From Blepharisma stoltei ATCC 30299 (lineage: Eukaryota > Protista > Ciliophora): DNA of 64,000 bases. Position numbers and translations under genes: made by a program. Numbering within the stretch: position 1 is the first letter of the stretch; every line of letters begins with the position of its first letter. Location of the stretch: assembly GCA_965603825.1 (NCBI GenBank), contig CBFDEM010000036.1, positions 434,001 through 498,000 of the forward strand, read 5' to 3'. This document shows positions 29,519-63,718 of this stretch, piece by piece. The notes beneath the pieces are model-generated. The model was not told the origin of the DNA. It did no database searches and saw nothing but the letters and a program-made list of their open reading frames with translations.

Positions 29519-29991
29519 TTATAATTTTATTATTAGATATGTTAGATTCAGAGAAGAAAAAAATTATGCTTCAAGATGCATTATAAAGAAAGGTACCTGC
29601 ATCATCAAAACTAAGTATAAATAAATAAAAAGGTACTCAGCCTAAACTACCTTTATTACAAAGGAAGCTTGAAATTTCAATTATCCCTATGCTGAGGTTT
29701 AACGCAAACATCTGCTCTTAACGTTTTTTCTTCTCTAATGAATGTCTATCGATGTAGAAGCTTTATACACTCTATTATAATTCTCTCACTCTATGAAAAA
29801 TTGTAATTTTAGTTTTCTCTTGCCTCTCCTACTGATAATTATCATTTGAAGTCTAAGGGTTGCGAGATAATTCTCCTAAGCCTTAAATCTTTCTCCTAAT
29901 CTGAGTTCTATACAACTTGAAAACTATGATTTTAGATTAGTATTAATTATTTAATATGTGCTATTTTTACATCTTCAACTTTAGATCTGAC

Positions 29992-31455
29992 TTATAGTAG
30001 ATTTTCATTGCAGTTTGGGCACTGTGCAGAGAAATTTCTCTGCCTTAGTCATTCATCAAGACAATTCGAATGAAATGGATGAGAGCAGAGGGTCACTCTG
30101 ATCTCATCATTATAAGCAATTTCATTTAAACATATACTGCATACAGGATCGCCTTTGATGGCCAAATCAGCAGAAAATATGAGTGATGGAAGAATCGAAT
30201 CAAGTTTCTGAGATTTTGACTCCACAGCTTTACTTGTTTGGATTTGGTATTGGCTTCTAGATGATTGGGGGATAATGTGATGCCCATGGCGATTCCTTCG
30301 TCGTTTTATAAGTCAAAATATTATTCCTCCTATGATTATGGAGGGAATAACTACGCATGTGACTGTAATAGCCACAGTTGTTTTTGTTGACAGTGATAAA
30401 GAAGTGCTCTTTTTGCATTGATTAATAGATTTATTGAGGACATTCATATCTGGATCGAATAAACCCAATGACTTAGAGCAATAATTAATCTGTTGGGATT
30501 GGTATAATGATCAATTCTCTGTTTCTTTGTAAATATTTTTAACTAAATTATATTGCTCTTCTGTTATAGATCCGCATGAAAATAGAATATCAATATCATC
30601 TGTGTGCGAAAATTTACCTGAGCAATTTGATGAGTCATACTTCAATGCGCTTGAAATTAGACTGGAGATGCATTTGAGGTATCTTATATATTGCCCACAG
30701 TACCCAGTGTCCTTATTCTTTCCATCGCACTCACAAGGAGTGCTTGCAAAAAGTGGATTTTTATTGCTGTTTCCAAGAAAAATACAATTATCTCCAATAC
30801 TACAATTGAAAGGATAATAAGACATTTCATCTTGTAGATATAAACTTAAAGAATCGCAAATATCTCCGATTTTCAACATACTTTTGCAAAATTTGCTATC
30901 TTCAGTTTTCTTGCCATCGCTTAAGGAAAAATATTGGACACATTTCCCAAAATTACACCCATACCCTGCTCCGCATTCATTGTCACGCTTACATCCATTA
31001 GAGCCAGAGGAATACGATTTATAGCAAAATCCTAAATCAGTGCAGTATAAATTTGTGTCGCACTCTTCGTCCTTTGAGCAGTGTTGGGATTCTTTGATGC
31101 CTATGCACCCAGATTTTCCACACTGCTCTGATTGGCAATCAGTATGTTTGCAGCAGTCTTGTCCAGTTAATCTTGATCTGTCTAAATAATTGCATATGCT
31201 TGAGGATTCATGAACACAAGTTTTATTGATGAATCTATCTATATGATTCAAATTTGGAGAGATGTTTTGCACAGGGCAAATGCTATTCGATCCACATGGA
31301 TTTAAAGTAATAACTTGCGATTGATTATAAACAACTAGGCAGTTTTGAGGATTCTGCTCAGAGCTGCAAGTTAAAAAATAGCATTCTTCAGCACTTCCAA
31401 GAGCATTTCTTATGAGATCCAAAGTGAAAATTGAAACTAAAAAATTAAAGGCCAT
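29992..31455 (-). CDS. Signal peptide - Cys-rich ectodomain - TM - RING-H2 E3 ligase (487 aa)
   Basis: Reading through TGA 30511 gives TM VAITVTCVVIPSIIIGGIIFWLI, then KRRR, then GDPVCSICLNE...CSHPFHSNCLDE(W)L...CPNC; TAA at 29992. The ectodomain has CxxDxEC repeats. Confidence 0.85.
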
Positions 31456-31784
31456 GCTCTTTTTTAAAGTGAAATCTTAAATGATAAATTAAAATAAAAT
31501 AAGAGATTGCAAAATTAATACTTCTACATACTAGCTATTGTACCAACATTCAAAACCATATCTTTTTATAAATTAAATAGACTTGCTTAGCTTAGGAAAA
31601 GCTATTTCATATTTACTTGAATTATTGCATTGGGAAAACTCTTGAAGCTATAGATTATTTGTTTTAAATGAATATCCTGCAAGAATTAAATATCCATTAA
31701 TTTTAAGCTAAAAATATAATCTAGCATTAATTAATATGCCTTTCTGAAAAGAATTTTAGCTTTCAATTATTAAATCTGTATTAA

Positions 31785-32282: not shown

Positions 32283-34190
32283 CTATTTTTTTTGCAATTT
32301 TAGTTTCCCATGAGCCCTCAATGCTCTCATGATTTTATTTCGATGATCAATTGGAATTAGTCTCCCCAAGCTTCATATGTTTGTAATCTCTCTCTGGACT
32401 TTATTGAGCTTTTTTACATAAACTGAAAAATATAAAAGCAAAACAATAACGCAGTATGAAGAACTGATCCATGCCACAACAAAAGCATCCTCATGTATTA
32501 GGCTCTTTATATCCGATTCATATAGGTCTATTAATTTTGCTCCCATTGCCATCAATTCCTCCTTTACCTCACTAATATCGTCCAAAGAAGGATCTTGACC
32601 TTCGATGATTTCCCAATAAATATTCCTCACTCCTAAGTAGTACTCGTTCAAAGAAGCATAAAATCCTTTTGACAAAGTAATGCATTCTTGAGAGATGCAA
32701 GCATCATCCCATATATAAGTATCATGCTTAGAGCTCCTGCTCAAAGAGGAAAGATAAAGAAACAATAAGTTGTACTCAGAAAATATTATCAGTTCTGAAT
32801 TAAAGTAAAACGCATCGTTAGGGCTTACTTCATATTCACTGTATGGAACAACCCATTTATAGCCTAAGCTTGAATTCGCATACTTTACTTCTTGAAGCCA
32901 GAAATAAGCTGCGTTTATGGATGATGTCCTCATTCCTGCCCAATTGTTAATTTTCGGCTTGATTTCCAGAGTGTTTCCAAATGTCTCGTATCCCAAAAAA
33001 TAAAAAAATAAAAAATAAGCAGCAGACAGCACATAATATACTATAAGTTTCACCAAAATTCCTTTCCATTTATTCGTGGCTTTGATATCGCTCCTCCCAT
33101 CCAGTGACTTGAATTTATTTTTTTCATTCTTTTTATCAGACTCAATGCCATGAGTTGTCTCCAACCTTTCTTCGCACCTCGATTTCATTTCGAGAACCAA
33201 ATCGATTGGCAATAAGTAAAATAAACTCCAGACAGTTTGATTTGACTTCTCTACCTGTCTCAATGTAGGAATTATAATTAAAAAAAAGCAGATAAAAATA
33301 AGAGCAATTGCGCATAAAGCAAGGATCAATATAATTCTCAAAAATTGGTTCATGCTTTCTTCGACGTCGTCTATGAAGTATTTAATAGACACATTTAAGG
33401 CCTGCATTGTTTCTCCGAAGCTGTTTCGGTAAATATAAAAGAAATCGGGATTTTTTATATCGATTTCTTGTAGAGGGGTATTATAAAGAAGTTGAGCTCG
33501 AGTGACGAGATTTTGCATTGCATCCATTAAATTTACATCAGTGCTATTGATTATCCCATTCTTCATTTGCCATGACTTAATATTTTCGTCTAAATACATA
33601 TCTTTTGCTTTTCCATCACTTCAAGCCTTAATATTGTCTTTAATATTGCTAATGATTTCATTGTAACGGTCTATATCAGTCATAAGTCTAGTTCTACTGC
33701 CTGCTTCCATTGAAGATGGCAATAATCCTTCATTAATCAAGTTTAATACTCTGGCATCTAGAATGAAATAGGTATTTAGTTCTCTTCTTTCAGCAAGATC
33801 GTTTATAATGACACTTTCCAAAAAGTTTGTGGCAATAAATTCAAGATAAATCATCATAGCCAGAGCGGCTATATTTACTATCACACACTATATAAAAGTT
33901 ACTGTAAGAAAAAAGGAGATTTTGAAACGTTTCATTGAGTTTGTGACTCCAGATAAGAGAACTTGTGCTTCTTGGCTTGAGGTGAAACTTGCGTTCGAAC
34001 TTACAGCAGAACTTGCAATACTTGTTCCTGACCTTTTTTTGTTTGAAACATCTTCATCAATTACAGAGAAAGAGACGACTGAAGCAGCGTCTGCAGCTTT
34101 TTCAGAGTTATCAAATACAAAGCCACCTAAGTCTTTTAGGTCAAAAATCTTTCCTTCTTGAGGCACAGGAAGAGGCTTTGCTGCTTCTTT

Positions 34191-63118: not shown

Positions 63119-63718
63119 ATGGTAAGAAGGACTCTTTTCCTTATTACTTGGAAGGCCTTTTTGACGTACTCCTGCTTATGTCCAAGCACATATTTAGGAA
63201 ATGGCCACTGCGACTCCCAGTGCAATGTTGCTGCTTGTAATTATGACCAAGGCGACTGCGACTCCGATTCTTCAGGCAGTTCCGATTCAAATACAATAAT
63301 AGCAACTATTGTAGGTGTTGTGGTCGGAATTTTTGTAATTTTTTGGCTGTAATCTTCATCTAGGGTAATCGGCTGTACGATTTACTGCAAATATCTTCAT
63401 AAAAAGAAAAATCAAGTATCCTGCGGTATTCAAAACGAGATTGATGGAAACTCCATAAGAGGATCCGACATCGAGTCATCGCAGTTAATAACAAAAGAAA
63501 TTATTCAAAAAATATCTCCTATTGAGAATTATTACGTAGGAATACCGATGGAAGGAGACCCTATGTGCTCAGTTTGCTATATTGATTTTAAAATTGGAGA
63601 TTGAATAAGAAGAACTCATTGCCTACATTTATTTCATGCAAAGTGCTTGGATGAATGATTACTATCTAGAAATTTAACACCTAAATGCCCAACTTGCGAG
63701 AGGCCATTTCTGGAATAG
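63119..63718 (+). CDS. Signal peptide - single LNR (Lin12/Notch) repeat - TM - RING-H2 E3 ligase (about 194 aa)
   Basis: CPSTYLGNGHCDSQCNVAACNYDQGDC is an LNR; TM IIATIVGVVVGIFVIFWL|VIGC. After the intron comes GDPMCSVC...CLHLFHAKCLDE(W)L...CPTC; TAG at 63716. Confidence 0.87.
63349..63363 (+). other. 15-nt intron (GTAATCTTCATCTAG)
   Basis: Removes an in-frame TAA and links the TM to the RING exon; A at -6. Confidence 0.88.

Follow-up and report, generated by a model that had tools for sequence, protein, structure and literature searches.

In animals, membrane-anchored RING-H2 ligases such as RNF43/ZNRF3 and GRAIL control the levels of receptors; in plants, those of the RMR type control vacuolar sorting. 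To our knowledge, almost nothing is known in ciliates of membrane RING-H2 ligases that carry ligand-binding outer domains. The PA-TM-RING family is defined by the combination of a PA domain, a transmembrane (TM) segment and a RING-H2 domain, and includes one member, RNF122, without an outer domain (PMC4021871). The RING domains of the plant AtRMR receptors are active E3 ligases that require a hydrophobic residue after Cys1 (an isoleucine, I234, in AtRMR1, where it is needed for E2 binding and activity), and the E3 activity of AtRMR is needed for the post-Golgi trafficking of the receptor itself (PMC12552968). On the ciliate side, the Tetrahymena Ser family exemplifies GPI-anchored cysteine-rich surface proteins (PMC4136848). 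Here we describe a gene of Blepharisma stoltei in which these two kinds of protein meet: gene 1, at positions 29992-31455 on the minus strand of the window, by which we mean the whole 64,000-nucleotide stretch analysed (C36:434001-498000). Gene 2, near 63 kb in the same window, served as the comparison gene, and the genome searched comprised 41.46 Mb in 64 contigs.

Results

Gene 1 encodes a predicted type I membrane protein with a RING-H2 tail

Gene 1 (29992..31455, minus strand) is a complete, intronless coding sequence of 487 codons followed by a TAA stop, and reads as one uninterrupted frame in the code-4 translation, with TGA as tryptophan. Genes in this DNA are intact only with TGA read in this way, and their introns are 15-nt GTA..TAG units; UGA specifies tryptophan in B. 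stoltei, and its published somatic genome has the identical code and equally tiny introns (PMC9942806). Three in-frame TGA codons were located on the minus strand, at 30511-30513 (Trp315), 30313-30315 (Trp381) and 30049..30051 (Trp469, the conserved tryptophan of the RING). Sequences with in-frame TGA were searched piecewise until a database protein of 487 aa (P0001) that is 100% identical to the gene 1 product was found; spliced models of other genes were joined and translated only for reading domain order.

The product begins with a probable signal peptide (residues 1-21; 31393..31455), which aligns with the N-terminal hydrophobic leaders of its paralogs, is weaker than theirs, and is followed by an 8-residue insertion ahead of the first conserved cysteine. 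An AlphaFold2 model places a helix at residues 7-18 of this stretch with low pLDDT, and cleavage of the leader is a heuristic call. An ectodomain of 339 aa with 32 cysteines follows (residues 22-360; 30376..31392). Hydropathy identifies a single TM helix (residues 361-383; 30307..30375; the 19-residue Kyte-Doolittle window reaches 2.55 at residues 365-383), which is succeeded by the basic run KRRRNRH, and the single helix together with the positive-inside rule suggests a type I topology. The remaining 104-aa tail, predicted to be cytosolic, comprises a 50-residue spacer between TM/KRRRNRH and a G-D-P motif (residues 435-437; 30145..30153), which takes the form G[E/D/Q][P/S]x-Cys1 that we use below as a subfamily marker, and a RING-H2 domain of the C3H2C3 type (residues 439-482; 30010..30141) with a 13-residue C6-C7 loop and the ending CPNC.

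The Pfam model zf-RING_2 (PF13639) scored this domain at 42.2 bits against a cut-off of 27.3 (residues 439-483). All eight metal ligands were kept, as were the E2-contact residues, namely the isoleucine after Cys1 (equivalent to I234 of AtRMR1), the tryptophan in the C6-C7 loop and the proline after C7; the product is a putative RING-type E3 ligase. The closest solved RINGs were those of AtRMR1 (AT5G66160, 7bvw; 7.5e-10), RNF13 (5zbu; 8e-10) and ZNRF3 (9ozx; 6.5e-9), all three from type I membrane E3 ligases. A search of P0001 for a PA domain gave no match at E ≤ 1; gene 1, which has no PA domain, is therefore not a member of the PA-TM-RING family by definition.

Gene 1 is transcribed across the junction of its two halves

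Four RNA runs from one 2022 study, X1, X2 and X4 among them, contain the gene 1 stretch. The contigs of all four are gene-sized pieces with little or no intergenic depth, and neighbouring genes differ up to tenfold, in contig depths that are unsuited to stage comparison or expression ranking. The X1 and X2 contigs skip positions 33888-33902 (minus strand), a canonical 15-nt GTA..TAG intron, and X1 and X2 therefore represent spliced RNA; the skipped intron lies near the 5' end of a neighbouring gene (ORF 32283-33857). The junction between ectodomain and TM-RING was bridged by single contigs in X1 (29917-31450), X2 (29966-31458) and X4 (29929-31287), and the X1 and X2 contigs span the whole gene 1 coding sequence. 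Transcripts thus run through the TM/RING part and do not end before it. In run X4, a second RNA contig of 130 nt covers 31258-31387 (codons 33-56 of gene 1) and differs at five sites. Three of the changes, one of them in the Cys39 codon, are synonymous, and two, V48F and T50A, are non-synonymous; the contig may represent a second-strain allele or a very close copy of the gene.

The ectodomain groups by sequence with a ciliate family of GPI-type surface proteins

Searching the same genome with the gene 1 ectodomain returned about 21 paralogs at E < 1e-19 (27-39% identity), mostly of 350-390 aa with about 30 cysteines, plus weaker ones. The reconstructed paralogs range from 316 to 662 aa, each with a signal peptide and 25-56 cysteines, and in every one of them a common 'GLFDP'-like motif is followed at once by a short, hydrophobic C-terminal tail; this tail has the shape of a GPI-attachment signal, which suggests that the paralogs are GPI-anchored. 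No RING was found in any reconstructed ectodomain paralog of this genome. In an alignment of 11 sequences (A2), gene 1 retained 26 of 26 invariant cysteine columns. Its homology to the paralogs runs from the leader to about residue 335; beyond this point, where the paralogs end, gene 1 has no GPI-type C-terminal signal and continues instead into a private linker, the TM helix and the 104-aa tail.

The family extends well beyond this genome. A profile of alignment A2 matched 1,894 cluster representatives at E ≤ 1e-3, and 71 at E ≤ 1e-30, in a library of 1.84 billion proteins, with P0001 itself at E 2e-104; many representatives measure either about 350 aa or, where the domain occurs twice, about 660 aa. 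Among the best 150 of the 1,894, a hydrophobic tail ended 102, and a RING was present only in P0001. Structural neighbours of the ectodomain in the Atlas were clusters of ciliate proteins (TM-score 0.61-0.62), some of whose members carry Dickkopf_N. Judged by cysteine pattern, length and alignment, the gene 1 ectodomain is a full member of this large ciliate family of GPI-type surface proteins of about 350 aa and 30 cysteines, a membership that the original prediction had missed. Two paralogs in the same genome (L053 at C53:1414k and L057 at C52:319k), of about 660 aa and 56 cysteines, look like tandem duplications of the domain, and the first of these, a distant paralog, carries Dickkopf_N above the Pfam cut-off (28.5 bits).

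The ectodomain had earlier been described as cysteine-rich with CxxDxEC (Dickkopf-N-like) repeats. The richness in cysteine (32 residues) and the motif itself stand, with exactly two C-x2-D-x-E-C motifs, at residues 126 and 155, but Dickkopf_N appears only below threshold: residues 125-174 scored 19.5-20.3 bits with Dickkopf_N (PF04706; cut-off 25) and 19.9-20.7 bits with DUF7107 (cut-off 24.6). We describe these residues (30934..31083) as a Dickkopf-N/knottin-like double module, modelled with a pLDDT of about 95. The AlphaFold2 model, built with the paralog alignment as input, had a mean pLDDT of 74.8 and about 95 over residues 120-200. No significant fold match to the whole ectodomain was obtained with Foldseek against the PDB (best E 0.14) or in the VIA wide search (best Z 3.2), and the sole matches, all weak and around residues 116-175, were to Dkk4, Draxin, colipase and ICK-toxin-sized modules, those to Dkk4/Dkk1 having E about 1 and Z 2.2. 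A Wnt/Dickkopf connection was rejected, the match being sub-threshold and the module a generic disulfide-rich knot; we know of no Wnt pathway in ciliates.

The TM-RING half corresponds to a small anchored protein and falls in a RING-H2 subfamily

RING-H2 domains are abundant in this genome, with at least 150 matches over the Pfam cut-off among 447 candidates. The best relative of the C-terminal piece of gene 1 in its own genome was L002 (C2:640008), which, once its 15-nt intron is removed, encodes a 138-aa protein with an anchor helix at its N-terminus, a RING and nothing else. Essentially all of L002 (residues 7-136) aligns with residues 359-487 of gene 1, at 43% identity in the RING-containing part. 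This equivalence of the C-terminal half to an anchor-only protein had also gone unnoticed before.

Of 25 RING genes that we reconstructed from retrieved loci, 21 form a group that includes genes 1 and 2. Its members have G[E/D/Q][P/S]x ahead of Cys1, 12-13 residues in the C6-C7 loop and the ending CP[N/D/T]C; gene 1 has GDPV, a 13-residue loop and CPNC. In five other TM-RING genes the loop measures 10 residues, as against 12-13 in the subfamily. A phase-2 15-nt intron within the TM-coding segment was present in 16 subfamily members, across all ectodomain classes, usually 4-6 codons before the end of the segment (range 1-8). It is missing in gene 1, L003 and L007, probably through intron loss, and the outgroup genes have no intron there.

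A profile built from ten other subfamily RINGs gave at least 148 RING-H2 matches genome-wide, with gene 1 at rank 18 (79.8 bits) and gene 2 at rank 25 (65.7 bits). About 25-27 loci had full-length matches, and no sharp score gap lay below them. We give the subfamily a size of about 21-27 genes, with a boundary that is not sharp by score in the genome-wide search. A maximum-likelihood tree of the 59-column region separated the 21 subfamily RINGs from a small outgroup of five TM-RING-H2 genes with moderate support (87/76). Within the subfamily the tree was poorly resolved: gene 2 paired with L013 (100/98), and gene 1 had no supported sister. The subfamily RINGs share 33-49% identity with one another and 29-36% with those of the outgroup. 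Candidates at C57:384172, C57:379525, C62:303434, C33:246661 and C33:248176 were left out of the reconstruction, as were the ectodomains of L004 and L012, whose gene models stop short of a TM segment and may have a 16-nt or non-GTA intron.

Two further searches bear on the distribution of these sequences. A metagenome scan with alignment A3 found 80 generic RING-H2 loci and none with the full subfamily signature, a result that argues weakly for lineage restriction, heterotrichs being rare in metagenomes. Word-based protein searches with a piece of the ectodomain, the C-terminal region of P0001 and full-length L003 each returned only the query's own protein; the tool is too insensitive at 35-50% identity for these results to mean more than the absence of a close ortholog from the records.

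Genes 1 and 2 are related members, and not a special pair

Gene 2 (63119..63718, plus strand), whose start was set by analogy with its paralog L013, encodes a predicted signal peptide, one LNR (63179-63262; Pfam Notch/LNR, 34.6 bits against a cut-off of 21.2), a TM segment (63296-63388), within which a 15-nt intron falls (63349-63363), and a RING-H2 domain (63566-63697). L013 is 75% identical to it in the RING region. As a query in the Atlas feature search, exon 1 of this gene produced no usable match.

The original prediction had set the RINGs of the two genes side by side as sharing family-specific features. Both of its RING strings were found letter for letter (30010-30141, minus strand; 63566-63697, plus strand), and both contain GDP three residues ahead of Cys1, CLDEWL and equal spacing (44 residues from C1 to C8, with a C6-C7 loop of 13). 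Every feature named is thus present, but most are generic, CLDEWL and the basic C3H2C3 spacing being those of RING-H2 domains at large. The relatedness of the two RINGs is borne out, since the subfamily profile picks both and the tree does not place them in unrelated clades. They do not form a special pair, being 42% identical over 59 columns, with gene 2 ranking 12th of 25 for gene 1.

One TM-RING cassette occurs behind several outer domains

The reconstructed subfamily members were then sorted by what precedes the TM segment. Three have no ectodomain and consist of an anchor and RING only (L002, L005 and L014a); about ten carry a single LNR or LNR-like module (L007, L008, L009, L013, L014b, L017, gene 2 and the three L006 genes); L011 has a short cysteine-containing stub; L003 has a thioredoxin-like domain of vacuolar sorting receptors (VSR_TRX, 53.5 bits); L016, L018 and L022 combine a VSR/PA-like domain with two or more LNRs, L019 being a fourth copy of this cluster that was left out of the reconstruction; and gene 1 alone, among the reconstructed members, carries the 30-Cys surface-protein domain. 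The LNR match among these relatives scored 54.5 bits. The cassette hence occurs behind at least four kinds of outer domain, and its shared sequence markers indicate that it is one TM-RING cassette of common descent behind several unrelated ones. The proposal that a single RING-H2 subfamily had been shuffled onto diverse ectodomains holds up in this respect, with none, LNR, VSR_TRX, VSR/PA plus LNR and the 30-Cys domain all represented.

Several loci were noted in the course of this survey. L003 (C50:111446-114616) is intronless and encodes 372 aa with VSR_TRX, TM and a subfamily RING; its product is 100% identical to a Blepharisma stoltei entry that NCBI titles 'unnamed protein product'. L006, L010 and L017 belong to a tandem array (C51:693400-698600) of at least five small genes for signal peptide, LNR, TM and RING-H2, each with a phase-2 15-nt intron inside the TM segment. 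Notch-type LNRs are massively expanded genome-wide (of 485 candidates, at least 148 pass the Pfam cut-off) and lie mostly in tandem arrays away from RING genes, for example at C30:72-159k, C8:3-49k, C36:128-186k and C39:319-345k. A separate group of type I TM-RING-H2 proteins of 430-460 aa (L024-L027, at C27:749k, C30:16k, C33:452k and C2:582k) has an ectodomain of about 290 aa with a teneurin-like EGF module and an ordinary 10-residue C6-C7 loop.

Discussion

Gene 1 is a real gene that is transcribed, and it is a chimera whose two halves come from expanded families. In the origin that we propose, a gene for a 30-Cys GPI-type surface protein would have been joined to a small N-anchored RING-H2 gene like that at C2:640008, and the anchor helix of the RING protein would have replaced the GPI signal and become a stop-transfer TM segment. 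In this arrangement the RING would face the cytosol, with the cysteine-rich domain extracellular or luminal. The outer domain might bind a partner, most simply the ligands of the GPI-anchored paralogs or the paralogs themselves, and the RING, having recruited an E2, could attach ubiquitin either to the protein's own tail or to transmembrane proteins nearby, a modification that would direct endocytic or vacuolar sorting. On balance, we think that gene 1 is probably a membrane-anchored E3 of this kind, in which the outer domain selects a partner and the RING marks the tail of the protein itself, or membrane proteins beside it, with ubiquitin for sorting. By analogy it may work like the PA-TM-RING, RMR or RNF43-type ligases; its topology, E3 activity, ligand and compartment are all deduced. 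The GPI-anchored paralogs themselves would be ruled out as direct substrates, having neither a cytosolic part nor lysines there. The 'surface-antigen turnover' suggested by the original prediction is likewise hard to picture as direct ubiquitination, because GPI-anchored proteins are without a cytosolic part.

An alternative reading takes gene 1 to be an endomembrane sorting receptor of the RMR type, which would cycle between the Golgi and a vacuole- or lysosome-like compartment, ubiquitinate mainly itself through its RING for post-Golgi trafficking, and bind luminal cargo with its cysteine-rich domain. That the closest solved RING is that of AtRMR1, that AtRMR depends on its own E3 activity for such trafficking (PMC12552968), and that the RING subfamily includes vacuolar-sorting-receptor domains (VSR_TRX in L003, and L018) all speak for it, but gene 1 has no PA or VSR domain of its own, and the relatives of its ectodomain resemble GPI-anchored cell-surface proteins and not sorting receptors. 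We regard this reading as rather unlikely.

Less probable still, in our judgement, is that gene 1 is a chance fusion, tolerated and transcribed without a distinct function as a by-product of high turnover in two expanded families. Such an accident would fit a single-copy gene that alone among the 150 best family representatives carries a RING, for which searches of protein records detected no ortholog, and whose parent families are both large and tandemly expanding. It is harder to reconcile with the state of the sequence, since the two halves have diverged far from their nearest paralogs (35-38% and 43-49% identity) and yet all invariant cysteines, the zinc ligands and the frame are kept, or with transcription in all four RNA samples. 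Were the fusion nevertheless functionless, its interest would be limited to gene-family evolution.

A further alternative, in line with the original prediction, is a dedicated recognition or signalling receptor for mates, prey or self, in which ligand binding would lead to ubiquitin signalling. The architecture, an outer binding domain with a cytosolic ligase, would suit this role, and the RNA samples, from a single study, are consistent with the published conjugation time course, PRJEB45374 as named in PMC9942806; we consider this role very improbable. The rarity of the architecture is all that would point to an assembly or annotation artefact joining two separate genes, an explanation that is scarcely credible for one open reading frame without a stop or frameshift across a junction bridged by independent RNA contigs from three runs.

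The significance of these findings lies in two directions. The TM-RING cassette, traceable by sequence markers and a conserved TM intron, offers a clean natural example of domain shuffling, one of its outer domains being otherwise confined to GPI-type surface proteins; and gene 1, as a single-copy gene, gives a concrete handle on how the cytosolic side might sense or sort a GPI-anchored coat. A broader and distinctly tentative extension, which we hold to be doubtful, is that Blepharisma, and perhaps heterotrichs, possess a lineage-specific repertoire of receptor ligases in which one RMR-derived TM-RING-H2 cassette stands behind abundant modules (LNR, VSR/PA, 30-Cys), with gene 1 coupling the GPI-anchored coat, or its ligands, to ubiquitin-dependent sorting. 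If this were true, gene 1 would provide a transmembrane link for a surface coat that is otherwise cut off from the cytosol.

Compared with described systems, gene 1 follows the layout of the PA-TM-RING proteins (RNF13, GRAIL/RNF128, Goliath/RNF130) and the plant RMR proteins (AtRMR1-4), which likewise have a signal peptide, a luminal or extracellular domain, a single TM segment and a RING-H2 domain. These proteins carry a PA domain, whereas gene 1 has a 30-Cys ciliate surface-protein domain instead; gene 1 also differs in the G[E/D]P motif ahead of Cys1 and in a C6-C7 loop two residues longer than those of AtRMR1 and RNF13. RNF122, the PA-TM-RING family member without an outer domain, finds a counterpart in the anchor-only genes of Blepharisma. 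The layout of the plant ATL family (a short N-terminus, one TM segment and RING-H2) also matches these genes (L002, L005 and L014), a likeness of layout; gene 1 differs in the large ectodomain that precedes its anchor. RNF43 and ZNRF3, cell-surface type I RING-H2 ligases in which the ectodomain binds an extracellular ligand and the RING removes neighbouring receptors, resemble the predicted gene 1 ligase, but their ectodomain fold differs from that of gene 1, and the sub-threshold Dickkopf_N match implies no Wnt link.

Within Blepharisma, the genes with VSR/PA, LNR, TM and RING-H2 and those with a single LNR, TM and RING share the RING subfamily of gene 1 (G[E/D]P, a loop of 12-13 residues, CPNC), whereas the ectodomain of gene 1 is unrelated to theirs and gene 1 is without the phase-2 TM intron that 16 relatives share. 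The GPI-anchored cysteine-rich surface proteins of ciliates (Tetrahymena Ser, Paramecium antigens), compared here by layout, are like the gene 1 family in their cysteine richness, signal peptide and hydrophobic tail; unlike them, gene 1 has, where the GPI signal would stand, a predicted true TM segment followed by a cytosolic domain. The proposed repertoire of receptor ligases had been put forward as the best candidate in this DNA for an undescribed system, a view that does not hold for its general plan, since type I membrane RING-H2 ligases with a ligand-binding outer domain are already known from the PA-TM-RING, RMR and RNF43/ZNRF3 proteins. Collectively, the overall design of gene 1 resembles that of known membrane ligases, and it differs from them in bearing a ciliate 30-Cys surface-protein domain on a putative membrane RING-H2 ligase.
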